From positions 868,001 through 932,000 of the forward strand of contig CAJFCJ010000008.1 in assembly GCA_904063045.1 (NCBI GenBank): 64,000 bases of DNA, given 5' to 3'. Position 1 is the first letter of the stretch. Each line of letters starts with the position of its first letter. The position numbers and the translations under genes were made by a program. Below the pieces are notes generated by a model. The model was not told the origin of the DNA. It saw only the letters and a list, made by a program, of their open reading frames with translations, and ran no database searches. This DNA is from Dimorphilus gyrociliatus. Its lineage: Eukaryota > Animalia > Annelida. Shown in pieces: positions 10,333 through 53,475 of this stretch.

Positions 10333-13300
10333 ATGGTAAGTTCATTTTCCAAAAGTTTTAAATGCTAATTTTGCAGTTTTTGTCTATAAAAAGTGAATTC
10401 TTTGAATATTTGAAAAGTAATAAATTCTCTAATCATATTAATTTTTACAGGAGTGTGCACCAGTTTGGTTTATAGTTACTATTTCTATGATATGTGGAGG
10501 TATGTTTTCTTTAATCTACTTGCTTTATTCTTTATTCTTCTAACAAAATATTTTTTCAAAATAGCTTATGGACAGTCTGCAGGAAGGGGTTATGATTTGA
10601 TATATTCGACCTGTTACAAGGATGGTGCTATTTGCTATAGTACACCAGGTAAGATGATCAATACTTTTGCTATTACAAGTTCAACCTCTTTTTAGCGATA
10701 TGAATATTAGGGATTAAATTAGCCAATGTTTATTTGCTATGTAGGTCCACCAGGAAGCCCTCCAGCTGCCGGTCCACCAGGACCTACAGGGTCACTAGGA
10801 GGAAGAGGTCCTCAGGGACCACTCGGGGATACTGGACCAGTTGGTAGGCCTGGAGATCCAGGACCTCAAGGACCTACTGGAGATATTGGAGATAAGGGTC
10901 CTGCGGGATATGCTGGGCCTCAAGGTCAACGAGGTCCTCCAGGACCTAATGGTCCAGAAGGTTCCACAGGCTCCCAAGGACCAAGAGGTATATGTTGTTA
11001 TGTTTTGTAAATTAAAGTTTTAATTTAAAAATATCAATTTTCAGGTTTATCTGGCCCTGATGGACCTGCTGGCCCTCAAGGACCTGCCGGTCAGACTGGT
11101 CCTCCTGGAATTGACGGACCTGATGGTTTACCTGGACCGCCAGGCCAACGTGGCCCTCTTGGTGATCAAGGAGAAAAAGGAGAAAAAGGATTTAGAGGGC
11201 AAATTGGGCCAGATGGAGGAATTGGTCAAAGAGGAGATCAAGGAAATAAAGGTTCTAAGGGTTCTTCTGGTCGACAGGGCCCTCCAGGACGTCAAGGTCC
11301 TGAAGGCTCAAGGGGAGATGCCGGACCAATTGGTGACCAAGGTCCTCCTGGCTCACAAGGACTATCAGGAGATAGAGGAGATACTGGTTTTACAGGTCAA
11401 AAAGGAATTAAGGGTGATGCCGGAATATTAGGTCCCAAGGGAGAAATTGGTAATATTGGCTCAAAAGGAGATGTTGGTGCGAAAGGAAAAATTGGAAATG
11501 AAGGTCCAAAAGGTGAAAAAGGACTTAGAGGAGGAAAGGGAGATGCAGGCCCCAAAGGCGACCAAGGCACACCTGGTCTCCAAGGTAGTCGTGGAAATGC
11601 AGGGCCTCAAGGTCCAATTGGTGATCAGGGAGCGACTGGCCCTGAAGGCCAAGCAGGCCTTGGCGGTTCTCCAGGTTTGGCCGGAGCAAAAGGTATTATT
11701 GGAAACACGGGACCAGGAGGGCCACCAGGAAATGATGGTGCGCAAGGGAGGCCTGGATCTAAAGGAGAGGATGGACCTAAAGGCTTACAAGGAGCTGCTG
11801 GTCTTCAAGGAGAACAGGGAAAGAAAGGAACTCAAGGTGTTCAAGGAGTTAAAGGAGATGCAGGTCCTCCAGGAGCCCAAGGTTCACCTGGTGTTAAAGG
11901 AGAAAAAGGTGATATTGGATCCACTGGTCCTAATGGCCTATCAGGCCCAGGTGGACCACAGGGGCTTTCTGGACAAGTAGGGCCACAAGGAGATAAAGGA
12001 CAACCTGGAGCTCGTGGTTCACCTGGACGAGATGGTCGTTCTGGAAGTGCTGGTGATGTTGGACCAGCTGGACCAAAAGGCAAGCATAATTATATATTTA
12101 TACTCTAACAATACTGACAAACAAAATTCTTCTTAGGTGACAAAGGAGCACCAGGAGATCAGGGAACAAAGGGTGCAGATGGAAATAGAGGCCCACAAGG
12201 AGATAAAGGTGATAATGGTCCCATTGGTGACCAAGGAGATATGGGTGATGTAGGTGCACAAGGCCTCGATGGAGATCAAGGAGCTGCAGGAGGTCAAGGG
12301 GTAAAGGGTGAAAAGGGTGACCTTGGACCTGCAGGTGAAAGAGGAAACACTGGAGGTCCTGGAATTCAAGGATTAGCTGGAGATAAAGGTGTAAAAGGCT
12401 TAGTAGGCAAGCCCGGTCCTCTTGGTCCTCCAGGTCCTCTTGGACCTGTAGGAGACAAAGGACTAGCCGGTGCTAAAGGCGGAATTGGACCTCAGGGTGG
12501 TCGTGGAAACCCTGGAGCTGTCGGTGATCCTGGAGCAGCCGGTGATGCCGGAGATGCTGGTCCTATCGGCGCTCAAGGTACCAATATTTTAAAAATATCG
12601 ATCCCGTAACTTTTACATATAAAATTCATAGGTGTCGCTGGTGACGCTGGCTCTGTTGGAAATAAGGGTTCTAAAGGGGATGCTGGTGCTGTTGGTCCTC
12701 CTGGTTCGCCTGGAGCCCCAGGAGATGCTGGACCTGCAGGAGATAAGGGAACGAAAGGAATAAAGGGATCCCTGGGATCACCAGGTGGTCCTGGACAGGC
12801 TGGAAAACCAGGCCCTAAAGGATTAAAGGGTGACATTGGTCCTCAAGGCCTGCAAGGGGCACAAGGGCCGAAAGGACCTGGTGGCCCAGCAGGTAAAGAA
12901 GGTCTTCCAGGAATTGCTGGTAGTGATGGTCCTCCGGGAGAAAAGGGAAGTAAAGGTTCAATTGGTGCCGCTGGACCCGTTGGTCCTCAGGGTTCAAAAG
13001 GAGATGTCGGTGCAACTGGAAACAAAGGACCTCCGGGAGCTGCAGGAAACGATGGTGCTGCGGGAGCTGATGGAATAAAAGGTATTTATCTGAGGTATGA
13101 TAAGATGACATACTAATAATTTATTCTAGGTTCTAAGGGTAATGCTGGTCCTCCTGGAGTTGCGGGTCCTGAAGGAGAAGCTGGACCTAATGGTCCTCCA
13201 GGAAACCAGGGCGTTGTAGGACCACCTGGTCTTCAAGGACTTTCGGGAAATATTGGACCACCAGGAGGTATTGGTAATCCTGGCGTTCCAGGTTAGTAGT

Positions 13301-16300
13301 TACTGGTTGTTTTTAAGGCAAATGTTAATAGTTTAACATTCCTATATAGGCAGTCCAGGTGCTGTTGGTGCTGCTGGAGTTCAAGGTCCAAGAGGACCAC
13401 AAGGGCCTCCCGGTTCAATTGGGCAACCTGGCGATATTGGACCAGTAGGTCCAAATGGAAATAAAGGCCCAAAAGGTTCTCAGGGCCCTAGAGGAGATAA
13501 TGGGGTACAGGGACCAAATGGAATTAAGGGTATTGCTGGACCAAATGGTGATATAGGAGCACAAGGTGCTAGAGGAGGAATTGGTCCTATTGGCCCATTG
13601 GGAGACAAGGGAGTAGCAGGACCTCCAGGACAAGAAGGACCTAAAGGAGATGTTGGAAATGCTGGTCCAATGGGACCAGATGGACAAGTCGGTCCGAAAG
13701 GTGCCAAAGGTGGTGTTGGAGATCAAGGCCCTAAGGGAAAACAAGGTACTCAAGGCGGTGTTGGTCAACAAGGAAAGAAGGGAGAACTTGGAGCTGCTGG
13801 GCCTTTGGGACCTCAAGGAGACAAGGGGGTCGTTGGAATAAAGGGAATTGTGGGACAGAAAGGTTTAGTTGGTGATCAGGGTATTAGAGGAGTGCCAGGA
13901 GTCCTTGGTCCGAAAGGTTCCAAGGGTGCCAAAGGTGGTCAAGGTGCCCAGGGTCAACCTGGTAATCAAGGTGCTCAAGGAGCTCAAGGTGTTATTGGAA
14001 ACACAGGAGCATCTGGACCAGAAGGGTTAACTGGTTTAGATGGGCCGCCTGGCCCCCCTGGTGCTCAAGGTTTACCAGGACCACAAGGGTCAGTAGGACC
14101 AAGGGGTGATACTGGACCTGATGGTATCATTGGTAGACTTGGCCCACAGGGAAGTATCGGTGCCCCAGGTCTAAAAGGACCTAAAGGTGATCAAGGAAAC
14201 CCCGGACAGGCAGGTGTCCAAGGAGATTCAGGACCACAGGGTCTTAAAGGAGATGTGGGAGATCAAGGAATAGCTGGACCAGCTGGCGAAAAAGGAGCCA
14301 AAGGTTAGTCAGCTTAAATCCTACAAAATCAATAATCTGTTATTTTTTACAAGGCGTCAAGGGTGAAGTTGGAAGTCAAGGTGCTACTGGTATGCAGGGA
14401 CAAATTGGTATAGATGGACAGCAGGGTGCTCAAGGCGCTAAAGGATTAGCTGGAGGCGAGGGTCCCAAAGGTTATGTCGGTAGATCAGGACCAACAGGTC
14501 CTCAAGGAAATAAGGTAACATTGTAGATTCTTAAACAACGAAAAGATTATAATTTTCGGGTTTCAATATATAAATAGCTTCAATTATATAAATAGACTAC
14601 CATAGTATTTATAATTTCAATTTCATGCAGGGTACCAAAGGGCAGCCAGGATCTAATGGTATTTCTGGAGATGTAGGACCTCAGGGTCCACAAGGACCTA
14701 AAGGAGCAAAGGGTGTGGCTGGACCTGCTGGAGCCACTGGAGATCCAGGCTTGCCAGGCAATTCTGGTCCTCAGGGAGGTGTTGGCAACAAAGGTAATAT
14801 TGGAATCAAAGGAATCAAAGGTCAAAGGGGACGAGCAGGAGAGCGCGGTGATTCAGGTAAGTTGCGCTATAGACGATAGACTTTGACTGTAACCGACATC
14901 CCACATCATAGGCGACCAGGGAGCTACAGGTGATCAAGGTTTGTCTGGATTAGCTGGTGCACAAGGTCCAGTTGGACCAGCTGGGCCAGATGGTGATACT
15001 GGAGACGCTGGAGAGATCGGTAACAAAGGTAGCAGAGGATTACCTGGTCCAGAAGGTGTTGTCGGCCCTAAAGGCATTGCAGGTGACAATGGAGGTGCAG
15101 GACCGCAAGGACCACAAGGGGCAAGAGGAGATCCTGGAGAAGCGGGTCCGATTGGATCAACTGGAGCGCCTGGTGAACCAGGCGTACAAGGAAGAATTGG
15201 ACCAGTTGGACTACGGGGTGATTCCGGTAAATCTGGACAACCTGGACCGGCAGGATCTGCTGGTCCCAGAGGTATTATATAAATTTTTACTGAGAAAACA
15301 CTAATTTACACACCGATCATTTATAGGATTACCTGGAGTACAAGGACCTCAAGGAGGAAAAGGAATCAAGGGTATTAGAGGGCCGAAAGGACGCCAAGGA
15401 GAAGAAGGACCACGCGGAAACGATGGTCCGGAAGGTTCACGAGGTGCCCAAGGAGAAAGTGGGCCTCCAGGAGCCCGAGGTGGTCAAGGTCCTAGAGGTG
15501 ATACTGGTGATATTGGTCCTGCAGGAGAAAAAGGTGATGATGGCTTAGTGGGATTGGATGGCCCAATAGGTAGAGTTGGTGATCGTGGTCCTAGAGGTCC
15601 AGATGGACCTAGAGGCCCAGACGGTAGGCCCGGTAGTATCGGCTTACGAGGACAGATTGGAAATCCTGGTAAAAAAGGAGCAAAAGGACCCCAAGGCGAT
15701 CCTGGAGATCCAGGTCAGCCAGGCCCAGATGGACAGCAGGGTGGAACTGGATACACAGGCCGTTCTGGTGTTGGTGGATCTGTTGGTCAACAGGGAGTTA
15801 TTGGTGGAACTGGAAACGAAGGTCCCGTAGGCCCCCGAGGTTTACAGGGAGCTCCAGGACCCCAAGGTCCGCCTGGTGCAACCGGTCCTAGAGGTGATGC
15901 AGGTGTTGCTGGTTTACAAGGTTGGTTGAGAAATTATATCTCTCTGTATTATAAACGAAATTCAAAATTCTAGGTTCTCCTGGAAACCAAGGACCTCCAG
16001 GTCCCACGGGTCCTGTAGGCGAAATTGGAGACTTAGGTCTTCCTGGACCAAAAGGAGCCAGGGGAGATGCAGGTTTTCCAGGTTTACCTGGAGAACAGGG
16101 TCCAGCTGCATCTGGAGCTGGAAGACCAGGTCCCGTCGGCTCTCCTGGTCTACCAGGTCCTCTGGGAGTTGATGAGTGTTTGGTAAACAATGGAGGTTGT
16201 CAACACGTTTGTGTCAATACATATGATGGATACTGCTGTATGTGTAACGAAGGATTCCAACTTGTGCCGGTTGCCCAAGAAGTGACGAACTGTGTTATTC

Positions 16301-17065
16301 AAGATGTTACTTGCAGAGAAACCCAAACGGCAGCGAGACAATGTTTCTGTCAGCTAAGAGACGCAAACGGAAATCCAACGAGACAACTTCCAATTAATGG
16401 AACAACATGCACTGATATTGATGAATGTTCAAATTCAAATGGTCTATGCGAACACAATTGCCAAAATACAAGAGGATCATACCAGTGCACTTGCAATCAA
16501 GGTTTTGCGTTGCATCCAAACAAAAAAGACTGTCAAGGTAAGGAGTGTTTGATAATTAAAATATTTTCTAAATTGACAAACGCGTGTCTTGAAAACTTCA
16601 GATGTTGATGAATGTGCTACGCCAAATATTTGTGGATCAAACAAAGTCTGCTCAAACACATTAGGAGGCTACCTCTGTGGCGATAGCAGTTTGTACCAAA
16701 GTAAATTGAACAACAATTTTTCATGACTATGTTTTTCTTTCTGCACAGATATTCTAATCCGAAGAGTCGCTGCTGCTGCTGCTGCAGCAAGAGAAGATGA
16801 TCAAGAAGATGAAGATGCCAGCTCAACAGTTTCATCTACCTCTTCAACGACAACTGTCCTAGCAGCTGTTCTAAGCGGCTTGTTGGCAGTCATTTTCACT
16901 GTAATAATTGTCATAGCCTATGGAACTTGGAAGAAACGTAAGAGCCGTGGCACAGGTGATGTAGAGACTTCATCCAGTCATAGTGCTAAAACGCTCGCTT
17001 CGAGTCGCCTAAATCTGGGAATATTCGGAGGTGATTCAACCGAACGACCTGCTCATTTCGTATAA
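10333..17065 (+). CDS. Collagen A: type I transmembrane EGF-collagen, about 1913 aa
   Basis: ATG at 10333 followed directly by an intron; signal peptide [21 protein letters not shown]; CYKDGAIC cap; Gly-X-Y exons 10745-16164; EGF units 16165-16700; [25 protein letters not shown] then KKRK; stop 17065. All introns frame-consistent. Confidence 0.9.
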
Positions 17066-17762
17066 TAATAAATAGATGAAAAGAAATCAGAGGAAAAAGA
17101 AACAACCTTTTTTTCCTCCTTTATAAAGCAAGAATATCAATAAATCTACATTTTATCTAGAGGAAAAAAGCCTTTTCGGTTTTTTTTTAACTTCCGGATT
17201 TTAGGTTCCTTTTTATGTGCAATCGAACTTAGTTAATTAAAAAAAATGAAGCCTAAGAATTTGTGTTGCTTTCATGTTTTTTTTCCAGCCTGAAGAATGT
17301 GCTTATTTTTTTCTTTGAATGAAAGAGTTTCGTAATAAAATGTAAACAATAGTGTGTAAAACTACCTTGTTTATGTCTGGCGTTTATGTATAAGTGTATT
17401 AGCATAAATGATATACAACGTTTACTTAGTTGGAAAAATAAAATAGAACAAAAGTAATAAAAATTTTGATGATTCCATTTAAAAGAGAATTTATTACTTT
17501 TAATATAAACTGAATAATCTTATCTTTTCTTTATGTATATGAAAAAAAACATTAATTACCAGTTAATTAGCTAAAGTCGGGAAAGAGATATTTTGTCTAA
17601 GTTCCACTCAAATATGATAAAAAAGATGGAGGAGGATAAGATAAACGAAAAAAACATTGCACATTCTTTCTTTTTTAAAAACAAAAATGTCTCTTTATTT
17701 AAATGTTTATGTATGCGAATTAACCCGTCTTCTCGGGTTTTCCAACCTCCTAAGCTTTATTT

Positions 17763-20700
17763 CTATGTAAAAGTTGGCGGCCGTACTGTCGTATGACGTT
17801 TTGAGAAAGTTCCATCAGAACCCACTGATGAGATAACAGATTCTGCATCGCTTGATTCTGTTGAAGTTTTCTGCCATCTCTTTCGGACAAGAACCACAGC
17901 TAAAGTTAAAAGGGCACAGCCAGCAGCTGAGAGCAATGAAGCTAAGATAACTGTATTGGTAGACGACGATGATGAGGCAATTACTTGACCAGGATTACCT
18001 CCCTGTGCAGCAGCCCTTGCCTGATTAGATGATCTAAACTCAAGGTCACCTAAAAAATTAAATTTTATTAGTAAAAGTTAGTTTGAGTAGATAAGACATA
18101 CCTTCGCTATGACAGAAATATGCTCCATATGTATTGACACAAGTTGAGAATCCTTGTCTCAGACATATTTGAGTGTCTTCGCATTCATTCACATCCACAC
18201 AAGATCTACCATTCGCGCTCAATCTAAATCCTCTTCTAGTATCACAAGAGCACGTGAAACTACCAACAGTGTTGGTGCATTGGTCCTCACAAGGTTTTCC
18301 TTCATCGCATTCATTTATATCTAAAAATAAATAGTTATTCTATAAGAATAAGTCTTTTTGGAAACAATTTGAATTGATTACCTTCGCATTTATATCCAGT
18401 TACTTGGAGAATATTTGAGGTTCCTTCTTGAGTACATTGACAAGATCTTTGATTATTAATATAACTGCATCGAACTGTTCCAGCTTTACAAGAGGCAGCG
18501 CCTTGAGGAGTGGGGATAAGGCGATAACCAGGTCTACAAAGACAGCAGTATCCGTCGTAAGTATCATAACAGATATGTTCACATCCATGATTGTCGTTCA
18601 AGCATTCGTTAACTCCTGTTAATTTTAAATGTTCTATACATGAACCTATTATTGAGAAATATATAATTACCGAAGTATCCAGGTGATCCTCTTGGTCCCA
18701 TTGGACCTGGTGGTCCAATTTCTGAGCCTGGCGGACCTCGGGGGCCCTGTTGACCATTTGGCCCTCTTCTTCCTTTGTTCCCAGCCGGACCTTGAGGGCC
18801 TTGTGGGCCTTTTTGTCCAGGATCTCCTGGTGGACCTGGAGGTCCATCTATGCCTTTCTCGCCATTAAGTCCAGCTGGACCTGAGGGGCCAACTGGACCA
18901 GCATCTCCGGCTTCTCCTGGTGGACCGTCTGGTCCATCTTCTCCTCTTGATCCTGCTTGTCCTGTATAACCTTGCATTCCTGTAGCTCCTTGTTGTCCAA
19001 CGAGACCGCCAGTACCGTCTTGACCCTGAGAACCTCGTGGTCCAGTTGCTCCTTGCATGCCAAATGGCCCATTTGGACCTTTGTCTCCGACACCCCCAGA
19101 CAAACCATCAGGACCTGGAGCACCTTTACTTCCTTGTTGTCCTATATCTCCAGCCTGCCCAATCCTTCCAGGTAAGCCTTGTGAACCCATGGGACCAGTG
19201 GAACCTTGAGGACCTTGTAATCCCGTTCGGCCGCGGCGACCTTGTGGTCCTTTAGGACCTTGTAGGCCAGTTGCACCCTTGGCTCCCTTTGAACCAACTG
19301 GACCGGGTGATCCAGCAGGACCTGTCGCACCCGGAGAACCAGCTCCTCCTGGTAAGCCGTCAGGTCCAGCATCTCCAGGATCACCAAGTTCTCCTTGATC
19401 ACCTGCAATTCCTTGAGGTCCTTGTAAACCAACAGGACCTTGTGGTCCTCTGACACCTTGTGGCCCTTCATCACCCTGAGGTCCTGGGGGACCATCGGGT
19501 CCTTCTGCTCCTTTTTCGCCCACTGGACCAGTTGGTCCTATAAGAACATTTTTTGATATTTTATTGCTTGAGAAAACTAAAACTACAAGTGACTTTACCT
19601 TGCAGACCAGGCAATCCCTTGTCACCATCTAAACCAGGTAAACCTGTCGCTCCCTGTTCACCTTGAGGTCCTTGAGGACCAGGATTACCAGCTTGTCCAA
19701 CCAAACCTTTAGCGCCTTGAATACCAGTGGCACCTTGTGACCCTCTAGAACCAGTATTACCAGGGGGTCCTTTCATTCCCGGATAACCTTTCGGGCCTTT
19801 ATCTCCAACGGCCCCGATTGGCCCAACAACTCCGGGCTGACCAACAGAACCATCTGGTCCCTTTTCTCCAACGACTCCTTTTGCGCCCTTTATTCCCCTA
19901 GCACCATCTTGGCCTCTTGCTCCTTGAGCTCCTTGTGGGCCTTGAGCTCCTATTTGTCCTTCACCACCGAGAGGCCCTTTGTCACCAGCAGGGCCCTTAA
20001 GACCGGGATCTCCTTGAGGACCATCTTGTCCGACTTGACCTTCTGGTCCAGCCGTTCCGATCGGACCTGGAATAACGTAAAAATAAAGTAAGTTTATATG
20101 TTCAGAAACAACGCTTTTTAGTTTACCTTTCGGTCCGGTTGCTCCAAGTAAACCTGTTTGGCCAGCAGGACCAGGATCACCGATTGGCCCAATACCACCT
20201 ACAGCACCACGATTACCAACAGGTCCGGTTATACCAGTGTCACCAACAGGTCCCAAAACTCCTTGTTCACCAGTGTTACCTACGGGTCCTGGATCTCCAG
20301 TTGCTCCAATACCTCCTTGTATTCCTATATTTTCAATGTTCCATATAAATTTCTTAGTATCTTAATAAGACAAAACTCACCAATGTCGCCTGTATCTCCA
20401 GGTAAACCTACAGCTCCCTGGACTCCTTTAACTCCAGGTTGTCCTGCATCACCGATTGGGCCTTTAGGACCTCTCGGCCCATCTACTCCTTTCTGTCCTT
20501 TATCTCCCTGAGGTCCAGCATCTCCTGTATTTCCTTCTAATCCTGGAGGTCCTCTCTGGCCAACTTGGCCAGGAGCACCTTTTCCGCCAGTTGTACCAAC
20601 AGCTCCCACAGGTCCATCACCGCCAGCAACACCTGGTGCTCCTTTTGATCCTCTAGGACCAGGTGCTCCTTCTGCTCCATCTAAACCAGTCGATCCAGTC

Positions 20701-23700: not shown

Positions 23701-24754
23701 GCACCAGGGGGTCCGTCTTGGCCTTTTCCACCTAATAATTTGAGCATAGTCAAAAACCTATCTTATAATGAAAAAATTTCGCATTTACCAGGTGGGCCAT
23801 CTGCTCCCGCATTGCCACTTAATCCTGGTCTTCCTCTGTTTCCTTGGCGACCAGGTGGACCTGCTTGACCGTCTGGACCTTTGGCACCTTGTTCCCCTGC
23901 TGGTCCTTGTTGACCAGGTGCTCCAGGTTGGCCTATTATGCGTATAATAATTCGATTATCATTGAAGGATAAAAATAATAGACTTAATTTCTACCTGGGT
24001 TACCAAGAGGTCCTTCATTTCCCGCTATTCCTTGAGGGCCTCTATCTCCAGGAGGCCCGTTTAATCCTTTAGGACCTACAGGACCTTCAGGTCCTGATGT
24101 GCCTATCGGTCCGTCTCTACCTCTAGGACCGCCTGGTCCCTTAGGGCCTTTTGCTCCATTAGGTCCTGGGTCTCCAACTGGCCCCCTTCCTCCAGGTGGA
24201 CCCTGGATTCCAGGAGGCCCATCAGGTCCCCCTGTTCCTGGTGGACCAGGAGGTCCAGGGGGTCCTGGACGAGTATTTACTCCTATGAAAAGAAATTTGC
24301 GTAAGATAAAATAGTTTTAGGAAAAACGAAAGTTACCAGATCCTTCAAAGCAAACACCTCCTTCGTTATTACATCTGACATTAACGCCATTAGATTCTTG
24401 TCCGCTTCCTATAATTCAAATGAATTAATGTAATCAAAAAGTGTTTGTAAAATTAGCATATTCATAAAGGAAAACTAGCAAACCTGTTTGTAAAATATAT
24501 ATCACAACTATCCAGGACGCTGCGACTCTACCAAAACGGCGCGCCTAAAAAAGGAATAACAAAGGTTTATTTAATAAAAAGTTCGATGTAGTTAAGCCAG
24601 ACATATTATATATCTATTGCTATGTTTAACTACAAATACCAGGCATTAACCTTTGAATTAATCAAATATCATTGGTTTAAATAAACAAATTAATTGAACA
24701 ATTTGTTTTTGTCATATAACATTAACTATACAAGATAATAGCACTTACCATCAT
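17763..24754 (-). CDS. Collagen B: type I transmembrane EGF-collagen
   Basis: ATGATG at 24754-24749 then intron; signal peptide [26 protein letters not shown]; CNNEGGVC cap; Gly-X-Y 24282-18672; EGF units; [24 protein letters not shown] then RKR; ends PPTFT* at 17763. Confidence 0.9.
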
Positions 24755-28400: not shown

Positions 28401-31400
28401 AGCCTGGTTGACCAGTTGCTCCTTGACCACCAACTGGACCACGAGAGCCGGCAGGTCCAGGGTCTCCTTGAACGCCAGCATCACCAACAACACCACGATC
28501 TCCATTAACGCCTTCGGGACCTACTTGACCTTTATCACCTTCAGCACCCTTATCTCCTATAGGTCCCTGATCTCCTGCTATACCAGGAACTCCTATGTAC
28601 AATAAAAGTTAAACTTAAAGATTTTCAAAAATGTTGTATTTCAAAATATCCTACCAATTGCTCCAGCAGGTCCTTGTTCACCAGTGAAACCATTACTTCC
28701 TGGTAGACCTTGAGGTCCAGGATTTCCTTGAAGGCCTTTAGGACCAACTTCTCCTGTATCTCCAGCCCCACCATTAGCACCAACGGGACCTTGAGATCCA
28801 GCTGTTCCCATTTCTCCTGATAAGCCTTTAACACCTTTTGGACCTTTGTCACCAGCCTCTCCTATATTGATAAAAATTGAAGATTTTTTTTATACACTAT
28901 ATATGAAGAATTATAATAAAGTCGAACACTTATCTCAAAATAGCATATTCAACTAAATAATGAAAGCAAATGAAATGAGCTTACCTTGTTTTCCTCTGTC
29001 ACCAGCAGGCCCTATTTGGCCTTTTGAACCTTTACCGCCTTGCGCGCCAGGATCTCCAGGAGCTCCAATTTGACCCTGAAGTCCTTGAGCACCCTTTGCA
29101 CCGATATCACCATCTACTCCTTTTTCTCCAGCAGGTCCTTTGGGTCCAGGGTTACCGACTGGACCATCTGGTCCAGGAAGTCCGTCTGCACCTTGAATTC
29201 CGTTTATTCCCTTTTCTCCAGGATTACCAACTTTTCCAGGTTCTCCAGCAGATCCTTGTGGACCCTATTAGAATATTTCTTTATCCTTGTATATCATTTT
29301 AAAGCATAAAATACTTACAGGAGATCCTTGACTGCCTGGATTGCCCTGAATTCCAGGTGGTCCTGCATTACCAGGCAGGCCAACTGCACCAGCTGGACCT
29401 ATCTTTCCTTTATTTCCATCTGGACCGATAGGACCTTGAATACCTTGGTCACCTGGCGGACCAGGGTTTCCGTTAGCTCCAGGACTACCAGGAGCACCTT
29501 GATCTCCAGGTATACCAGCCTCACCACCCGCACCGCCTGGTCCTATGGGTCCTTTCGGACCTGCAGGACCTGGGTCACCAACAGCTCCACCAGCTCCAGG
29601 TGTGCCTGCTCTTCCTGCAGGTCCAACTTTTCCCTTATCACCATTTCGACCATTATCTCCAGGTGGGCCTTTCGCTCCTTGGCTTCCAATCGTTCCTGGA
29701 TCTCCAACATCTCCACTCTGTCCTGGCAATCCTTGTAAGCCAGTTGCACCTTGTAATCCAAATCTACCTGGCGATCCGGCATCCCCAGTGAAACCAGGGT
29801 TACCTGGTGCTCCGGGCAGGCCTTGTGGTCCTGGACTACCTGCTCCACCTTGCGCTCCTTTATCACCTGGTGATCCAGCTACCCCATTTGGGCCAGTAGC
29901 TAAAAACAGGCGCTATGACTCACTTATATTTGTTATCCTTTGTAAACTCACCTCCTTGAGGACCCTTAGCACCTCCGGTTCCTTCAGGGCCTACATTTCC
30001 AATTGGCCCCTGAACACCTGGTTCTCCTTTTATACCTGGTGCACCTTTTTCTCCTGCGGGACCTGCATCTCCCTGGGGTCCGTCAAGTCCTTGAGGACCA
30101 GCGGGACCCTTAGAACCAGCTGGTCCAGGGTCTCCTATATCTCCAGCGGGACCAACACTTCCTGTATCGCCTTCTGAACCGGGCAGTCCGTCTGGGCCAG
30201 GAGAGCCTTGATCCCCCGCATCCCCAGTGTCTCCCTGTAGACCTTTGGGACCAGCAAGTCCTTGGCCTCCCTGAGGTCCTTGATTTCCAGTGTCTCCCAT
30301 TGGTCCAGGATCCCCAACAGCACCTTTCTGGCCATCTATTCCCTTTGGCCCTTTAGCTCCAGGAGCACCTTTAGAGCCAGCATCCCCTAGATCTCCTGGC
30401 TCACCTATTTAACAAATAATGTAAATGAAGCAAACTTTTTTATGAGAATTTTCATCATAAAAAGTAATAAAAAGTTTTTATTACCAATTGGACCATTTGG
30501 TCCAGGAGCACCACCTGCTCCATCACTTCCTGGGGGTCCATCTATTCCTATATCACCTGTATCCCCTTCTGAACCCTTCGGTCCCTTTTCTCCTGGTAGA
30601 CCTGGGTCGCCTTGAGGACCAGTAGCTCCCTAGATATAAATATAATTACAAAGTCTTAAAATAAGAACTTTAGATTTTTTTACCTGTTGACCTTGTTGAC
30701 CTGGGTCACCATTAGGGCCAGGTAAACCTTTTGACCCAGCTGGTCCTGGATCGCCATTAGACCCAATTGGACCAAACTCTCCTGGATCTCCATTCTTTCC
30801 AGGTGCACCGCTTGCTCCTTGTGTACCAATCGGTCCTATATCTCCATTTGGCCCAATAGGACCGGTGTTTCCCATATTTCCTTTTGGCCCATCTGGGCCG
30901 GTAAATCCAGGATCCCCTACATAAATTATATTTATTTAGGCTTATTTCTAATATTAATCTCTTCTAACCTGGTTGTCCTGGTGGACCATCACTTCCAACG
31001 TTGCCTTTTGGACCAGGAGGTCCAGACATACCAGTAAATCCTTGATCACCTCTGTTGCCATTGATTCCTGGTGAACCTCTACTTCCTTCAGAACCAACGT
31101 CACCAGGCGCACCTTAAAACAAGAAGAGTTGTAGGACTATATTCAATCGAAATATTCACATACCTGGTGGGCCACGGAAACCAATTTCTCCTTTATCACC
31201 TACTGTTCCTTTTGGTCCCACAGATCCTTTTGGACCATCTTCTCCTTTGGGTCCCTGTGGTCCTTGATCTCCTGTATTTCCAGCTGGGCCTGGTGGTCCT
31301 TTGTCTCCACTCTGTCCGGGCTGCCCCTGTGCACCATTAATTCCACTTTCTCCTTGAAGCCCTCTATTTCCTTGTGGCCCTTGATCCCCTTGAGGTCCTC

Positions 31401-32274
31401 GAATACCATTAGGACCTTTTATTCCAGTTGGTCCTTTCGGTCCTATACTTCCAATGTCCCCAGGTTGACCAGCTGAGCCTGGTGGACCTACAAAAAATAT
31501 CAATTAAGAAAATTAATAAATTGTCATATTGCATATAATCATGAAATTCTGGTTCAAGTAGATTACCTTGCTGACCGTCAGCACCAGCTGGCCCTTTATC
31601 ACCAGGATCGCCAACCATTCCTTGTGGACCTCTTGGTCCTTGTAAACCAGGGGAACCATTTTGACCTACACCTCCTTTATTTCCAGTAGCTCCCTGAGAT
31701 CCACGAGGACCAGGATTTCCTTGTCGCCCAATATTTCCTACTGGACCTTGAGGTCCAACTGGGCCTTTGGGACCAGGTTTTCCAAAGTTACCAGAACGAC
31801 CAGGAGGTCCTGTTCCACCTGGATTCCCTTGGTCACCTGGGGGACCTTCTCGTCCCTCCGGACCTGCAGGTCCGGGTGGGCCCTGATTGCCTTTGGGGCC
31901 GATAACACCTCTTGGACCGATTCGGCCAGGAGATCCGGAAGAGCCGGTCGCACCTGGAAGACCTGCTGGCCCCGGTGGCCCAGGAACTCCTCTCAGACCT
32001 TGAAATAGAAATCAGTACTTATTGAAAATAATTTATTTTATTTAGGTGATTACCCGTTCCTTCCATACACAGACCGCCTTCCTTACATTCTGTATTTTGA
32101 TCACCTCCAACACCTCTGGCGGAATTCTGACAAAATGCTACAATAATAATAAAAGAAGAAAATTAAACGAGAGGTAACACAAAAGAAAGATTTGTTTGTA
32201 GAAGAAATTAGCATACCTTTGCTAACGAACAGCAAAAAAATAACAATCGGTAAAACGCTGAGCCTTTTTTCCAT
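25417..32274 (-). CDS. Collagen C: type I transmembrane EGF-collagen
   Basis: Signal peptide [23 protein letters not shown]; CKEGGLC cap; Gly-X-Y 31998-26309; EGF units; [22 protein letters not shown] then RHIIKKRRK; stop 25417. Confidence 0.9.
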
Positions 32275-33247: not shown

Positions 33248-36200
33248 ATGCTGAAGGTCCTTGCACTATTTTACATTTTCTCTGGAGTAAACTGGAGTAA
33301 GTATCTTATTTTTCCTTTAACGTTTTATCAATTCTTGTAGTAACGCATTTATATGCAAATATCTGCATATATGCTTTATCATCTTTTAAATATATTGATA
33401 ATTTTAAACCATCTTATTTATCGAATATCGTATTTATTGACCAAAATAAAAGAAATTTTGACAACTTTATTGATGTTCTCATAGTTTTACAAAAAAGAAC
33501 TTTTTCTTCTTTAGGTCTGGCTTTTTTTCTTGTGAAATTTTTTTTACAGCCTTTTTTTATATACAATTTTTAATATTCTTTTTTTAAACCAATAGTTTAC
33601 GCTCAGCAAAATGTTGGGGAAGGGCGAGGCGGTGACCAGACTGTAAAATGCAAAAAAGGAGGATTTTGTTATGATGGCACAGGTAGTCTATCAGACATTT
33701 ACCCTTTTAAACTCTTTCATCTATATTTTTCTTCACGATAATTTTCAGGCCAAAGAGGAGCTCCAGGTTTACCAGGGCCTGTGGGACCCCCAGGGGAGAC
33801 TGGTCCTGTAGGGGATAGAGGTATCGTAGGGCAAAAGGGTGTTCTTGGACCTAAAGGAGACAATGGCCCTCCAGGTAATTAATTACTCAAAAACAAACCC
33901 AATACACTGAAACATACGATTTTATTCTGTAGGTCCAGACGGAAACTATGGACCACAAGGTCCAGTAGGAGATACTGGTCCTCCTGGTTTTACGGGATCT
34001 GCAGGTCCACCAGGCCAGAGAGGTCCAATTGGATCTAAAGGCCCCCGTGGTATTCAAGGAGATAGGGGAAGAATAGGTCTAGCAGGTTTGGCTGGACCTG
34101 GTGGTCCCCAGGGGCCAGCTGGTAAAAAAGGTACCAAAGGAGTTGCTGGAGGACCTGGAGATTTCGGTCCACCAGGCTTACCTGGGGAAGACGGAGACAG
34201 GGGTGATAGAGGCCCTGTAGGAAATACAGGATTAGAAGGTATACATTTATTTTTCAGATATTAGATTTACGCTTTCTTAAAATTATGAAAAGGTCCAAGA
34301 GGGTTACCAGGCGATCGTGGGAGTAATGGTGATAAAGGTCCCCAAGGAGCTGAAGGCATTAAAGGAGCTCCTGGATCTCAAGGAGTGGCAGGAGAGTCTG
34401 GTCCTGTTGGGGAAAAGGGGACTAACGGTACAGATGGTCTACCAGGTGCAATTGGAAGAGATGGACCAGTAGGAGATAAAGGAGATCGCGGCCCACAGGT
34501 AAAAATACTTTGTTCATTTTTATAGTCAATAAAAAAAGGTATTTTAGGGGAAAATAGGAGAAAAAGGCCTCAAAGGATTACTGGGCTCTACAGGACCAAA
34601 GGGAGATAATGGCCCAAAAGGAATTATTGGTATGAAAGGAGAAAAGGGTTTCCGTGGTCCTTTAGGCGAACCAGGATCAGTCGGTAATCCAGGAATTGAT
34701 GGTCAACAAGGATTTAATGGGGGTCAGGGGTTACAAGGTTCAACAGGAGATACTGGGGGTATAGGACCCAAAGGAAACCCTGGTCCTGTTGGTAGTCAAG
34801 GATTACAAGGTGATTCTGGACCCGTTGGTCCAGCCGGGCCAAAGGGTTTACCTGGGAGCACAGGTGTACAAGGACCAGGAGGCAGTCCAGGACCACAAGG
34901 GGATAAAGGAGAAAAAGGTTTTCCTTAATCTGGCAAAGTTTCTGTTACTAATTGATTTTTGAACTCTAGGTTCTGTTGGTCTTCGTGGCATACCAGGAAA
35001 TATAGGAGTAATCGGTCTTAAAGGAAGTAATGGAAACCCTGGTATAAATGGACTGTCCGGCCCTGGAGGTGATCCAGGTGAAATAGGACCTCAGGGCAGT
35101 ACAGGACCTGAAGGAGATCCGGGAGTACCTGGTGTTAAAGGTTCAGCCGGAGGGCTTGGCGATACAGGTGATATTGGTCTAGATGGACCAATGGGAAAAA
35201 ATGGAACGATTGGTCCTGACGGAGATACTGGACCAAGAGGTACATTTTTGTCAACTATGATTCTTAATTTAACTATTTATATTAAATTCAGGTCCTGTCG
35301 GCGATGTTGGGGATCGAGGAAGTAAAGGGCCCGTAGGTAGTAAAGGACCACAGGGATTTGATGGATTAAAAGGAGATGCAGGAGAAAGGGGGTTTACAGG
35401 GCCGGACGGTCCTAAAGGACCAGTAGGCAAAGCTGGCGCTCAAGGTCTTCAAGGTAATAGAGGGAATGCTGGTGATGTTGGTGACACAGGCCCGCCAGGA
35501 GAAATCGGTTTAGTTGGAGGGCTAGGAGCAACTGGAGAAAAAGGACCTATTGGAGATCCCGGGGAGGCAGGAGTACCTGGTGGAAAGGGAATGAATGGAG
35601 AACCTGGACCAGACGGGCCGCAAGGCGATGCAGGTCAACTTGGTGAAAAGGGTGTTATAGGTCCAAAAGGAGATCAAGGATCCACAGGTCCTGCTGGAGC
35701 CATTGGAGTAGAAGGTGCTAAAGGCAACAAAGGGCCTCTTGGTCAGCAAGGAGTCATGGGAGATTTTGGACAACCTGGAGATAAAGGTGATATCGGTAGT
35801 AATGGTCTGCCTGGCAATAAGGGACAAGTTGGCGCCGCCGGACCAGCCGGGCCTATAGGAGATATTGGATCTCCTGGCGATGCAGGACCCGATGGATCAA
35901 TAGGATTAGATGGACGACAGGGTTCACCTGGAGACGCAGGAGGACCAGGTCCCCCCGGAATTCAAGGAGTTAAAGGCGTGAGAGGAGACTTTGGTTCTCG
36001 AGGAAATCCCGGTCCTGCAGGACCAAATGGTAATATAGGCCAAAATGGTCGTGTTGGCGATGTTGGTGATGTTGGAGTTGCTGGAGCTAAGGGAGCTCTA
36101 GGATCTGCTGGAGAAAAGGGAGCTGATGGGCCCATTGGTAACCCTGGAATCAATGGTGTTCAAGGACCTCGCGGTAAGCCAGGTCCAATTGGAGATCAAG

Positions 36201-39200
36201 GTGATACTGGGTTAGCAGGTGTAGATGGTGTAGTGGGGCCTTTGGGACCTCAAGGGCCTCAGGGAATTCCAGGGCTTGTAGGAGGTGTTGGTTTGGCAGG
36301 TCTACCAGGACTGCAAGGGCCAAGAGTAAGATCTGATAGTCCGTTTTAAGGAATCTTACTAATATTCCTCTTTTCAGGGTGATACTGGTGCTTCCGGAGC
36401 TCCTGGTCAATCAGGAGGCCAAGGCATACAAGGTGCCCAAGGTCAACCTGGGAGCGATGGACCCATGGGATCAACGGGTGTAAGAGGTCCTGTAGGGCCT
36501 GTTGGGTCTCAAGGTAGTAAAGGCTCAAATGGTGATTCTGGACCAAGAGGTATAAAAGGTATTCAAGGAAATGTTGGTTCTCCTGGAGATTCAGGTCCAA
36601 AAGGGCCGGCTGGTAATAAAGGGTTAAAGGGTCAACCAGGACAACAAGGATCTAGTGGAAGAAAAGGAGATATCGGAAATCCTGTATGATTCTTAATTTT
36701 TCTTGTCTTTTGTATTCATGTTTAACTGAGAAATTTTTTATTAGGGACCAAAAGGGCTTCAAGGTGAAAAGGGAGTTGGCAATCTAGTAGGAAAAACAGG
36801 TCCCCAGGGAAATCCGGGCGATATTGGAACTAAAGGACAGAAAGGTCAGAGAGGAGATAAAGGCTTACCAGGTAATGTGGGATCGAGAGGCGACACTGGT
36901 GGCCAAGGACCTGATGGACCTCTTGGCATTAAGGGTTTACGGGGTGATGAAGGTGGTGTTGGCGACAAGGGCCCTGTTGGAGAAAAAGGATCTCTTGGCC
37001 CATTAGGGCTTCCTGGAAAAAGGTAAAAAACTTTTTTTTGCATCAAAGTTTAATGTGTATTTATGTTTTTCAGAGGTCAACAAGGAGATGTAGGAGATCA
37101 AGGGGTTCTAGGGCCTGCAGGTAACAAAGGCAGCCCGGGGATTTCTGGAATCCCAGGAGTAAGAGGTTATACCGGACAACACGGGCCAGCTGGACCTAAT
37201 GGAAGAGCTGGACCTGCCGGTCCTGTTGGTTCTCAAGGTAATACTGGCGCACCAGGTAATGTGGGAGATAAAGGGCCACCAGGAAATACTGGAGCACCTG
37301 GACCACAAGGTCCTAAAGGCATTTCAGGTCCTATAGGCCCTTTAGGTGACCAAGGAGCTGTTGGGTCGAAGGGAAGTATAGGAAGTAAAGGTCAATCAGG
37401 TATACAAGGAGTAAATGGTGAAGCTGGGTATACTGGTTCTACTGGTCAAAAAGGTTCACGAGGTAATAAAATTCTGTTGGCATTAGCGAAAATATTTATA
37501 AATTTTTCTTATTTAGGTGATCAAGGGCCTGTTGGGGAAAGGGGTCCTAATGGCAATATTGGTCCACAAGGTTTTACTGGTAATACTGGGTCAAAAGGTA
37601 TTCAAGGATTAGTTGGTCAAAAAGGAAGCCAAGGACTTGTTGGAGAACCTGGCTCAAAAGGTCCTCAAGGTCCTCAGGGTAATCAAGGAGATGTCGGACC
37701 AATTGGAAATCCTGGGCAACAGGGCCGACCAGGAGGACCTGGTTTGCGAGGAAATACTGGTGATAGAGGAGATATTGGAATAACTGGAGCGAAAGGACCA
37801 ATTGGTAACAGAGGTCTGCCAGGCAGTCAAGTAAGCTTTATAGTCAAGAGATCATTTTCTTTCATTTTAATTATTTTGTATTTCTTTTAATCGACTTTAG
37901 GGAGATCCAGGAGAACAAGGAGACTCTGGTGGAATTGGAGATCCTGGTGACCCTGGTCCTAATGGAGAGGCAGGAAAACAGGGTCCTCAGGGCAGCCAAG
38001 GAGCAACAGGAAATACTGGTGTTCAGGGCAGAACAGGATTCACTGGTGCACAAGGATCCAGAGGCTCTCCTGGTGCTACGGGGGGAAGAGGTCCTGACGG
38101 AGATATTGGAGAAGACGGCATTGTTGGACCTCAAGGACCAGCTGGTGATAGAGGCAGAGACGGCTCAAAAGGCTCTGTTGGTCTTAAAGGAGAAATTGGT
38201 GTCATTGGTGGCCGAGGCCCTGCTGGTTCTAGAGGTCCACTGGGGAACACAGGAAATCCAGGCCCTGTTGGGCTCAAAGGAGATCAAGGACCTATCGGAC
38301 CGGAGGGTCCCCCTGGTGATACAGGGCCTATTGGAAGAGAGGGGTTAGTAGGAAGATCAGGAGTACCTGGTGTTCAAGGTGACATCGGGGGTACAGGTTT
38401 TCAAGGAGAAAAAGGAAGAGTGGGACCTCGAGGTTTTATAGGCCCACTTGGTGCTACAGGAGAAAGAGGCATCAAAGGAATAATTGGTTTACAAGGATTA
38501 AAGGGTCAAATTGGTGCTCGAGGTCAAAGAGGACCTGCTGGAATAAAGGGCAATGATGGTCAAAACGGTGGGTTAGGAAATCCTGGCCGAGAGGGGCAGG
38601 TTGGTCCGCCTGGTTTAATAGGACCACAAGGTAAAAAATGATAAATAAATATTATCTTAAATATTCTTACGAATATTTTGAAGGCTTTACTGGACCGAAA
38701 GGACGCGCTGGTCCGAGAGGTGTGAGAGGAAATAGAGGTTCTGTCGGCGACAAAGGAGATGCTGGAAATCCAGGGCAAGCAGGGCCGATAGGAAATCCGG
38801 GAAGTCCTGGAGTTCTAGGAGTTCGCGGGCCACCTGGACCACAAGGATTTACAGGTTCTAATGGTCCTGTTGGGGCGACTGGTGGAACAGGTGGAACAGG
38901 GAACACAGGTCTTACTGGCCTTCCTGGATTACATGGTCCCAGAGGATCTATTGGACCAAAAGGCGATGCTGGTCGCCCTGGAGATACTGGCTCCGTTGGG
39001 CCTCTTGGTAATAATCTTTATCTTATTGATATCACTCCAGTCGATAGAATTTAATTTAGATATTTCATCACTCAGGTTCTAGAGGGTCACCGGGTTCTAA
39101 CGGAGCTCGAGGACCAACAGGACAGAGGGGAGAACCTGGAGACGATGGAGAAGAGGGTCCAATGGGTAAGCAAGGTCCAGCTGGAGACCCAGGAGGTCAG

Positions 39201-40177
39201 CCGGGTCCTGTCGGCCCTCCGGGTCCACCTGGATTTTTTGGGGCAAATGAGTGCCTAGTTAACAACGGCGGTTGCGATCATGTATGTATGGATACTTCAG
39301 ATGGATACTGCTGTCTTTGTCGTCCGGGTTATAACTTAATCCCAGTTCCTATTACGGATACAACTTGTTCGAGTTCGTACAAACAAATAAGTAAATAACT
39401 ATTTTATCAATAAAAATAATACTTAACAACAGTTGATTCTGTATCCTGCTCCTACATCGGATCGCAAAGAGTATGTACATGTACAGATACATCAAATCAA
39501 ATAGTTGTCATTAGTGGGACGCGTTGTAGAGGTAATATATTTTTTGTAAAATATTTCTATGTTAAAGTTAATCTTTAATATCATCAGACGTGGACGAATG
39601 TCGCCTCGGAAGCCATAACTGTGATCAATACTGCTTTAATACTGTTGGGTCTTTTACTTGTGGTTGTAGGCAAGGTTTCGAATTGAGCACTGATCTAAGA
39701 ACTTGTGACGGTAAAGAGATAAACCTTTGCTTCTTATATATAGAGACATGCAATTAAATCTCTCAATCTCCGTTTACAGATGTAAATGAATGCGAAAAAT
39801 CGGCCTCAGCCTGTGATCAAGGGAGAACTTGCGTTAATACTTATGGTTCTTATTTCTGTTTTGGTTTGTATTCTGTCTTGGCCATTTTTATTAGTATTAA
39901 GTATTTTATTCACTAATTTTTACTTATATCATAATCGTATTTAGGTGGTGGGATTGCTCAAGGACCACCAGTTGCTGCAAGTCAGAAAGGAAAAAATCCG
40001 AATCAAAATGGAATGCCTGTTGAGAATGGAAGTGGAAACACAATTACAATTGTCTGTCTTTCTGTCGTAACTGCGTTACTTCTATGTGGGGTGATTGCGA
40101 TTGGAGTTCGAAAATTCATCCTAAGACGTCGTAATTTGGGAGATGTCGAAACGGATAGCAGCTCGTCTGCTTTTTAA
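33248..40177 (+). CDS. Collagen D: type I transmembrane EGF-collagen
   Basis: Signal peptide [20 protein letters not shown]; CKKGGFC cap; Gly-X-Y 33749-39239; EGF units 39240-39864; [24 protein letters not shown] then RKFILRRR; ends [11 protein letters not shown] at 40177. Confidence 0.9.

Positions 40178-53438: not shown

Positions 53439-53475
<37 letters not shown>

Follow-up and report, generated by a model that had tools for sequence, protein, structure and literature searches.

Four clustered genes, here called A to D, in the analysed stretch of 64,000 nucleotides of Dimorphilus gyrociliatus (the window) very probably specify the chains of a single type I membrane-anchored collagen, which according to its sequence would assemble as an obligate ABC-type heterotrimer with C or D as the leading, B as the middle and A as the trailing chain. 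The preliminary description of this DNA had proposed that the equal length of the collagenous domains reflects a residue-by-residue register and defined heterotrimers. The directional pairing of charges between the chains supports both proposals and narrows the composition to A plus B plus either C or D.

All four genes contain introns. Gene A lies on the forward strand (10492 to 17065; ATG at 10492, stop at 17063-17065), and its model comprises a signal-peptide-like start, the collagenous part and the C-terminal exons. Gene B (reverse strand, 17763 to 24379) was modelled from the Cys-pair exon to the stop codon at 17763-17765, the first exon and the ATG lying outside the model. Genes C (reverse strand, 25417 to 32274; ATG at 32274, stop at 25417-25419) and D (forward strand, 33248 to 40177; ATG at about 33248, stop at 40175-40177) each have a spliced 5' end with a signal peptide, followed further on by the C-terminal blocks; the spliced 5' end of D includes an upstream exon that ends at 33055 on the forward strand.

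Four collagenous domains of equal length

The collagenous domain was counted from the intron-split first Gly that follows the Cys pair up to the triplet immediately preceding G-x-[ND]-E-C, and introns were placed by one fixed rule: at each break of the Gly-X-Y periodicity, the shortest GT/GC-AG intron that restored the phase was chosen. This confirmed the earlier count of 4818 nt (1606 codons) in A, B, C and D, and the outer limits proposed for the set were exact, intron 1 of A ending immediately before 10745 and GAN-EC of D following immediately upon 39239. When the final triplet is included, each gene has 1609 codons, and the domains occupy positions 10648 to 16173 in A (forward strand; final triplet GVD, the 1606 residues ending at 16164), 18608 to 24337 in B (reverse strand; the last intron splits the Gly of the final GVN), 26300 to 32054 in C (reverse strand) and 33682 to 39248 in D (forward strand; one non-Gly triplet, NLV, at residues 886-888). 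The intron sets differ, as had been noted, with 11 introns in A, 14 in B, 15 in C and 13 in D. The chains are typical of collagen in their long, nearly uninterrupted Gly-X-Y repeats (each has about 533 Gly-led triplets, interrupted locally one to three times) and in being rich in imino acids, Pro making up 23-32% of the X and 14-18% of the Y residues. One break of the Gly-X-Y phase is conserved: in A it reads ASGA (16108 to 16119, forward strand), 18 residues short of the helix end, and its equivalents, with one extra residue each, are found at 18717-18719 in B, at about 26345-26347 in C and at about 39201-39203 in D.

Equal lengths could also arise as an artefact of the gene models, if the real transcripts differed by multiples of 9 nt. 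Several combinations of donor and acceptor are compatible with the phase at each intron, longer phase-keeping introns exist at most junctions and would alter the count by multiples of 9 nt, and some of the chosen donors are weak (GCAAGC, GTACCA, GTTGGT, GTTGCC and GTTTTC). However, spliced contigs from two sequencing runs, X1 (an RNA metatranscriptome) and X5 (library type not on record, spliced contigs present), matched 12 out of 12 tested introns within positions 30001-36000. Six of these belong to C (30405 to 32053), where the contigs of both runs confirmed the predicted bases, and six to D (33683 to 35291), including the one with the weak GTTTTC donor at 34918. In gene B, 0.61 (X1) and 0.77 (X5) of the genomic 31-mers were found, whereas complete splicing to 4818 nt of exon would, by calculation, give 0.767. 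The donor of A at 12080 is GC, and its intron stands at nucleotide offset 1279, which is common to all four genes. The direct checks against transcripts and another species covered six introns each of C and D and five of the 11 introns of A. Since the same total was obtained four times from one fixed rule, and the cross-chain register described below has no local offset wherever there is signal, we regard an artefact as highly improbable.

Comparison of the intron positions, a point absent from the preliminary description, revealed eight ancestral positions that are retained at identical or almost identical offsets. Counted in nucleotides from the first Gly, these are 1 and 1279 in all four genes, 433 in B, C and D, 757 in B and C, 2313/2314 in C and D (with that of B slid by 1 nt), 3286 in A, B and D, 4033 in A and C, and 4654 in C and D. 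Most of the introns are in phase 1 and split the Gly codon. The presence of eight common offsets in divergent chains implies that the register has been kept along the whole domain and that the agreement goes beyond the mere total.

The X and Y residues had been described as very divergent between the paralogues. This holds for all pairs but one, with identities at the background level of 12-14%, whereas C and D align without gaps at 26% X/Y identity at offset 0. All four chains agree in 14 columns, where 8.3 would be expected (a difference of about 2 SD), which is at most a weak excess. The clustering of the genes and the gapless alignment of C with D would fit an explanation by inheritance only, in which a recent duplication or gene conversion left little time for insertions and deletions. 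On the other hand, A and B are no more similar to any other chain than shifted controls are, and this, together with the differing intron sets, indicates that the divergence is old and bears no sign of conversion. In addition, a 3.2-kb contig of a related species (L001) encodes 670 residues of an A orthologue without a single indel at 35% X/Y divergence, which points to selection against indels and not to a short time. This orthologue carries five introns at offsets identical to those of the last five introns of A and has ASGP where A has the ASGA phase break; the expected conservation of length in orthologues was thus borne out for A over these 670 residues, to which the comparison is confined. 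The equality of the four lengths is neither chance nor a consequence of recent duplication, and the explanation by inheritance only is extremely improbable.

Directional charge pairing between the chains

The axial Lys-Asp/Glu analysis that had been proposed for predicting the register uncovered a strong excess of interchain pairs in one cyclic pattern only: from C or D to B at i+2, from B to A at i+2, and from A to C or D at i+5. Pairs of a basic Y with an acidic X residue numbered 56 from B to A (16.6 expected), 44 from C to B (13.6 expected), 49 from D to B (18 expected), 63 from A to C (23.6 expected) and 69 from A to D (22.9 expected). When only Lys and Asp were counted, the excess was about 4.5- to 6-fold, with 53 pairs against 9.4 expected from B to A (hypergeometric P = 4e-42), 41 against 6.6 from C to B (P = 5e-33), 38 against 8.4 from D to B (P = 3e-22), and 51 against 11.3 both from A to C and from A to D at i+5 (P = 3e-32). 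The reverse directions and the other offsets tested for axial pairs were at expectation. The same cycle was followed by pairs of an Arg in Y with an aromatic residue in X, which from B to A cover five of the six aromatic X residues of A (P = 5e-7), from A to D six of 13 and from A to C four of nine. Among the charge pairs employed in designed heterotrimers, the axial Lys-Asp pair has been described as the strongest. The observed offsets are those of the salt-bridge rule given in section 7 of PMC11923368 (leading to middle i+2, middle to trailing i+2, trailing to leading i+5), and the division of Y(n)-Gly-X(n+2) contacts into two axial pairs and one lateral pair (PMC12086834) matches our data.

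The pairs are spread across all ten tenths of the helix. Shifting any one chain by one triplet reduced the number of basic-Y/acidic-X pairs from 174 to 102-107 in D-B-A and from 163 to 92-104 in C-B-A and abolished the excess at the interfaces of the shifted chain, and thus the i+2, i+2 and i+5 pairs are lost upon misalignment, as is expected of an ABC heterotrimer. Locally, zero shift was the best in 13 to 18 out of 20 segments, which argues against intron errors of 9 nt wherever a segment has enough pairs, as such an error should displace the stretches flanking the intron relative to each other; pairs are scarce over the last 400 residues of the interface between the leading C or D and the middle B, and the local register is uninformative there.

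To rank the possible compositions, attractive and repulsive axial pairs of either polarity were counted in all 64 ordered trimers. D-B-A (182 attractive/6 repulsive) and C-B-A (176/13) scored best, followed by D-A-A (125/15) and B-A-C (118/15). The latter scores leave some room for another stoichiometry, either an A2 type (D-A-A or B-A-A) or the joint incorporation of C and D into one trimer. However, such trimers fall short of D-B-A and C-B-A by about 55-65 attractive pairs. Moreover, C and D largely use the same positions for pairing, 50 being common towards A (of 63 in C and 69 in D) and 34 towards B (of 44 in C and 49 in D), which implies that the two chains compete for one slot and are not complementary. 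We therefore consider another stoichiometry very improbable.

It could also be argued that each paralogue forms a homotrimer of its own, the lengths being kept equal by selection on rods that jointly serve as spacers of one fixed length or pack sideways in register. A and D do retain many motifs with a basic Y and an acidic X residue at i+2 within the same chain, and their homotrimers reach 100/27 (AAA) and 70/30 (DDD). In addition, runs X1 and X5, which are bulk samples, one of them a metatranscriptome, each contain all four genes. In contrast, B and C have fewer self pairs than expected, and neither contains a single KGD (8.4 expected in B and 7.3 in C); CCC scores 41/28, and BBB is more repulsive than attractive (15/30). 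Homotrimers also cannot account for the directional, cyclic excess between chains at i+2, i+2 and i+5, with P values down to 4e-42. The staggered lateral packing that this explanation includes would call for a long-range periodicity, and neither charges nor hydrophobic residues displayed a convincing one, so that the laterally registered fibrils that had been offered as an alternative to heterotrimers found no support, though lateral register may exist as an additional property. Homotrimers as the general explanation are thus very improbable. As the A homotrimer scores moderately, other assemblies may coexist with the predicted A plus B plus (C or D) trimer. The numerous RGD and KGD strings of A and D are side effects of this charge code, and no integrin-type G-x-P-G-E-R motif was found in the chains.

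The A orthologue provided a further view of the predicted pairs. In its 670-residue fragment, 47 of the 49 charged residues of A that are predicted to be paired have been kept, compared to 26 of 36 unpaired charged residues (Fisher P = 0.003) and 187 of 321 other X/Y residues (Fisher P = 2e-8). In this fragment, no other X/Y positions are as well conserved between the two species as those of the paired residues.

Predicted architecture and assembly

Each of the four chains has a signal peptide, an N-terminal Cys pair, the collagenous helix, three EGF-like modules, one C-terminal transmembrane helix and a short tail, about 1900 residues in all. The signal peptide, which looks cleavable, and the topology were read by eye, and on this reading all four belong to the type I membrane proteins, which had not been recognised earlier. 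The Cys pair lies directly before the helix, at 10612 to 10647 in A (forward strand) and 24338-24373 in B (reverse strand), with the pattern C-x6-C-x4-Gly in A, and at 32055-32087 in C (reverse strand) and 33649-33681 in D (forward strand), where the pattern is C-x5-C-x4-Gly. The C-terminal non-collagenous region of A (16174 to 17065, forward strand) matched the Pfam families FXa_inhibition, EGF_CA and cEGF and ends with a transmembrane segment followed by WKKRKSR; the architecture is the same in B (17763 to 18607, reverse strand), C (25417 to 26299, reverse strand) and D (39249 to 40177, forward strand). One EGF-like module comes right after the helix and is followed by a Cys-containing linker, two calcium-binding EGF modules (the last one partial), an acidic and Ser/Thr-containing stalk, the single transmembrane helix and a basic cytoplasmic tail. 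EGF_CA was scored at 34-57 bits in all four genes (curated cut-off 27), and FXa_inhibition, on the first module, at 34-58 bits in A, B and D and at 29.4 bits, under the cut-off of 33.4, in C. Inspection of the stalks by eye revealed no furin-like R-x-x-R site.

The chains of the predicted trimer would be staggered by the usual one residue over a helix of about 460 nm (calculated as 1606 x 0.286 nm). Its register and composition would be encoded by about 140-150 directional Lys(Y)-Asp/Glu(X) axial salt bridges (163-174 with Arg), to which the Arg-to-aromatic pairs would add, while homotrimers of B and C would be disfavoured by the lack of their own KGD and by like charges facing each other. At its C-terminal boundary the helix would directly adjoin the membrane-tethered EGF-like module, and at the N-terminal boundary the conserved Cys pair could form interchain disulfides. 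We infer that the three gene products co-assemble physically, fold from the C- to the N-terminus and are knotted by disulfides. The gain or loss of a triplet in one chain would misalign all pairs on one side of it and leave one end out of step; such indels would be removed by selection, and the length of 1606 residues would therefore be kept in every chain despite the saturated divergence of the X/Y residues. As for the role in the animal, a cell-surface spacer or an anchoring rod is our guess.

Relation to known collagens

Fibrillar collagens form heterotrimers from paralogues, and those of the COL1A1/COL1A2 type (major helix of 1014 residues) resemble the chains described here in having a long, near-uninterrupted helix that is invariant among co-assembling paralogues. 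Another likeness is the probable folding from the C-terminal non-collagenous end towards the N-terminus (PMC11923368). However, the helix has 1606 and not 1014 residues, the introns mostly split the Gly codon in phase 1, there is no convincing long-range periodicity, and EGF-like modules with a transmembrane helix stand at the C-terminus, with no N-propeptide. A COLFI domain (fibrillar C-propeptide) was not detected, the C-terminal region being fully explained by EGF-like modules, stalk and transmembrane helix, and the genes are not members of the fibrillar group. Annelid cuticle collagens, with about 8000 residues, were likewise rejected as an identity.

The MACIT collagens (XIII, XVII, XXIII, XXV) and MARCO share the tethering of a triple helix by a single transmembrane helix. 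These are type II proteins with an N-terminal anchor and interrupted or short helices, described as homotrimers, whereas here the N-terminus is signal-peptide-like, the near-perfect helix of 1606 residues is followed by EGF modules, a C-terminal anchor and a basic tail, and an ABC trimer is predicted; membership in the MACIT group was therefore rejected. By language-model features the nearest cluster was CCBE1 (score 0.90, 115 shared features, a weak match), which likewise combines collagen repeats with calcium-binding EGF modules. CCBE1 is a small secreted protein with the EGF modules N-terminal to two short collagen repeats, and its clusters contain proteins of 300-430 residues, in contrast to about 1900 residues, collagen preceding EGF and a transmembrane helix here. 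We treated this likeness as a resemblance of parts and not as membership. Collagen types IV, VI and IX and C1q are similar in combining three different chains in a fixed composition, and the head-to-head arrangement of C and D (ATGs at 32274 and about 33248) recalls the paired genes of collagen IV. In those types, the selection of chains is ascribed to globular non-collagenous domains, the helices are interrupted and the chain lengths unequal.

The closest correspondence is with designed ABC heterotrimers and the natural salt-bridge code, in which the same Lys(Y)-Asp/Glu(X) rules (i+2, i+2, i+5), Arg-aromatic axial pairs and, in the designs, negative design against homotrimers are found. The differences are that the present system is natural, that its Lys-based pairs (about 140-150, or 163-174 with Arg) extend over 529 triplets, and that almost all of them join different gene products. 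According to PMC11923368, human collagen types average about 50 salt bridges each, and the alignments of human collagens are termed "proposed", direct verification lacking.

An exhaustive HMMER search with the EGF exon of A was dominated by multi-EGF proteins, a fragment, P0095, being the sole related match. Word-indexed searches retrieved P0095 only and no full-length orthologue with the EGF exon. When a collagen exon of 344 residues served as the query, they gave only generic collagens, for example MARCO and collagen-like proteins of bacteria. In the literature searched we could not find a description of a type I EGF-collagen or of an architecture of signal peptide, Cys pair, 1606-residue helix, EGF modules and C-terminal membrane anchor. 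We lean towards regarding the cluster as an undescribed class, a type I membrane-anchored collagen of about 460 nm in which about 170 directional axial charge pairs, distributed over the entire helix, would determine chain choice and one-residue register, homotrimers would be designed out, and two interchangeable leading chains would give two isoforms.

The choice of chains and their one-residue register in collagen heterotrimers are still argued, even for type I. If our reading is correct, this cluster is the clearest natural counterpart of the designed ABC collagen heterotrimers and its register can be read directly from the genome, with 44-69 pairs against 14-24 expected at each of three interfaces. 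It would be a natural, testable model for the salt-bridge code, for a helix length frozen to the residue amid sequence drift and, possibly, for the transition from a homotrimer to an obligate heterotrimer through complementary loss of the halves of Lys-Gly-Asp motifs.

That the animal is a spiralian is also evident from a flanking exon of the cluster, which encodes a STING-ER-exit-protein-like sequence, the best named matches of which are from annelids and molluscs (62-65% identity).

Length and divergence of the four helices

The 10.3-40.2 kb part of the window is distinct in G+C content and strand skew and carries four long Gly-X-Y coding regions interrupted by introns of 48-159 nt. These are the collagen genes A (10492..17065, + strand), B (17763..24379, - strand), C (25417..32274, - strand) and D (33248..40177, + strand). 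The pair A and B is arranged tail to tail, the pair C and D head to head. The divergently transcribed C and D have their ATGs about 970 bp apart (32274-33248), an arrangement that recalls the collagen IV gene pairs, which are likewise head to head.

For each break in the Gly-X-Y periodicity, every GT/GC...AG pair that restored the phase was enumerated and the shortest intron was chosen. The count began at the Gly codon that is interrupted by the intron following the Cys pair and ran up to the final triplet preceding G-x-[ND]-E-C; on this definition the helices of A, B, C and D each comprised 1606 codons (4818 nt), or 1609 with the final triplet. The recount thus reproduced the preliminary description, according to which the collagenous domain is exactly 1606 residues long in all four genes, and its coordinates were exact: base 10745 directly follows intron 1 of A, and base 39239 directly precedes GAN-EC of D. 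Each helix is nearly perfect. All four chains break phase at a common place, 18 residues from the helix end, where B, C and D carry one additional residue and A reads ASGA; A and B each contain one non-Gly triplet inside the first nine residues. D alone has a mid-helix non-Gly triplet, NLV, at residues 886-888 (36781-36789), which in a D-containing trimer would be a single-chain substitution at the Gly position with the length unchanged.

The X/Y residues (the non-Gly positions of the triplets) had been described as very divergent. In ungapped alignments this was true of A-B, A-C, A-D, B-C and B-D, whose X/Y identity was at background at every offset, but C and D retain 26% identity at offset 0 versus 9-12% at other offsets. 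The equal lengths do not stem from a recent duplication. The intron sets are also unlike, as previously claimed, with 11 introns in A, 14 in B, 15 in C and 13 in D. Measured in nucleotides from the first Gly, eight intron positions nevertheless coincide, or nearly so, in more than one gene: 1 and 1279 in all four genes, 433 in B, C and D, 757 in B and C, 2313/2314 in C and D and, slid by 1 nt, in B, 3286 in A, B and D, 4033 in A and C, and 4654 in C and D. These shared introns are ancestral and serve as fixed marks. No net indel separates them in any lineage, and therefore the register has been held along the domain and not merely in total, in agreement with the residue-by-residue register proposed earlier.

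Directional charge pairs and predicted trimer composition

Interchain Lys-Asp/Glu axial pairs were analysed by counting the basic Y residues of one chain that face acidic X residues of another at offsets from -4 to +8, with all other triplet shifts providing the expectation. Only five ordered chain pairs stood out. At i+2 these were B to A (56 observed, 16.6 expected, z 9.8), C to B (44, 13.6, z 8.3) and D to B (49, 18.0, z 7.4), and at i+5 A to C (63, 23.6, z 8.3) and A to D (69, 22.9, z 9.9). The reverse directions of these five showed no excess, with counts at expectation. Self pairs at i+2 were depleted in B (3 versus 14.1 expected) and C (7 versus 17.4), and KGD was found in neither B nor C (0 versus 8.4 and 7.3 expected, respectively). 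Nearly all of the cross-chain pairs were Lys-Asp, for which alone the hypergeometric P values were 4e-42 (B to A), 5e-33 (C to B), 3e-22 (D to B), 3e-32 (A to C) and 3e-32 (A to D). Pairs occurred in every tenth of the helix, being sparser in the last 400 residues at the leading-to-middle interface. Shared ancestry was ruled out as the source of the pairing signal, because the signal is directional, joins chains without residual identity and includes an i+5 class that is not derivable from a Lys-Gly-Asp motif.

A weaker excess was seen at lateral offsets, namely i+2 for A to C and A to D and i-1 for B to A. This fits a published description in which a Y(n)-Gly-X(n+2) motif of a homotrimer contributes one lateral pair in addition to two axial ones (PMC12086834). 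Contacts of Arg(Y) with aromatic(X), a second axial type employed in designed heterotrimers, followed the same cycle, involving 5/6 of A's aromatic X residues for B to A (P 5e-7), 6/13 for A to D and 4/9 for A to C.

Section 7 of PMC11923368 gives a sequence rule for salt bridges of i+2 from the leading to the middle chain, i+2 from the middle to the trailing and i+5 from the trailing to the leading. Since the observed pattern matches this rule, C or D would be leading, B middle and A trailing. When attractive and repulsive pairs of either polarity were scored for all 64 ordered trimers, D-B-A (182/6) and C-B-A (176/13) were the best and the next best reached 125/15; the homotrimers scored 100/27 (AAA), 70/30 (DDD), 41/28 (CCC) and 15/30 (BBB). 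With any one chain displaced by a triplet, the number of basic-Y to acidic-X pairs fell from 174 to 102-107 in D-B-A and from 163 to 92-104 in C-B-A. We read C and D as alternative occupants of one slot because they use largely the same pairing positions, sharing 50 towards A (of 63 and 69) and 34 towards B (of 44 and 49). Thus, the defined heterotrimers suggested in the preliminary description are strongly supported by the directional charge pairs and can be sharpened to a predicted (C or D)·B·A in defined register. Two bulk samples, one of which was a coral-associated metatranscriptome, each contained all four genes.

Transcript and orthologue support for the gene models

Spliced contigs from two sequencing runs, X1 (an RNA metatranscriptome) and X5 (library type not on record), placed all 12 introns of C and D within 30001-36000 (6/6 in each gene) at the predicted bases. 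They also showed the 5' introns whose removal reveals the signal peptides; in D the 5' exon ends at 33055 and the two 5' introns are 33056-33243 and 33297-33595. For B, 0.77 of the 31-mers sampled from the genomic region were present in X5; by our own arithmetic, the value would be 0.767 if all 15 exon segments (4818 nt in total) were fully spliced. In most windows, and on both sides of most introns, no shift gave a better local charge-pair register than zero; where a window holds enough pairs, this speaks against undetected 9-nt errors.

A 3.2-kb contig of a related organism (72% nucleotide identity) covers the C-terminal 670 residues of the A helix with zero gaps, so that the length is conserved over this part of the orthologue, and its five introns have offsets identical to those of A. 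In this fragment 47/49 of the A residues predicted to be paired were conserved, in comparison to 26/36 unpaired charged residues and 187/321 other X/Y residues (Fisher P 0.003 and 2e-8 versus paired).

The A intron at 12080-12136, at the offset of 1279 nt common to the four genes, has a GC donor (GCAAGC...AG); its support comes from position and cross-chain register, not from RNA. X5 contigs diverge from D at the exon positions 33748, 34900, 35142 and 35212 into other collagen-like sequence, and these branches could be paralogue assembly joins or alternative exons.

Protein architecture and the fixed helix length

Each protein begins with a signal-peptide-like segment, where splicing is RNA-supported in C and D, followed by a short two-Cys segment (C-x6-C-x4-Gly in A and B, C-x5-C-x4-Gly in C and D). 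An EGF-like module (E-C-L-x-N-N-G-G-C...) abuts the helix end, and a Cys-containing linker separates it from two calcium-binding EGF modules (Pfam). The remainder of each chain consists of a stalk that is acidic or rich in Ser/Thr, a single hydrophobic helix and a short tail beginning with a basic run. The predicted topology is that of a type I membrane protein with the collagen rod, calculated at about 460 nm (1606 x 0.286 nm), directed away from the cell. A fibrillar C-propeptide was not found in the four proteins, and a literature search found no published description of this EGF-collagen architecture; the nearest match by protein-language features, weakly so, was CCBE1.

The frozen length could be explained if the helix were pinned at both ends. 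Nucleation would be likely at the C-terminal end because the EGF module directly adjoins the helix and is membrane-tethered; other collagens nucleate at the C-terminus (PMC11923368). At the N-terminal end, the Cys pairs could knot three chains only if these arrive in step, and the roughly 170 directional pairs along the helix would require the chains to be in precise register. Gain or loss of a single triplet by one chain would throw every pair to one side of that point out of alignment, so indel alleles should be purged, while individual X/Y residues outside the pairs would be free to drift. The cluster would represent a heterotrimeric collagen with an unusually legible natural charge-pair code.

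Outside the cluster, 443-838 (+) is an exon of a STING-ER-exit-protein (UPF0428/CXorf56) homologue, whose best named matches are annelid and mollusc proteins with 62-65% identity and which one further fragment matches at 89%. On the basis of this flanking gene the animal was judged to be a spiralian. Immediately 3' of D, 40936-42177 (+) is an open frame of 413 residues without obvious identity. ORF fragments at 48600-57000 (-) and 61065-61463 (-) bear a by-eye likeness to a large intracellular calcium-release channel gene and a MORN-repeat protein.
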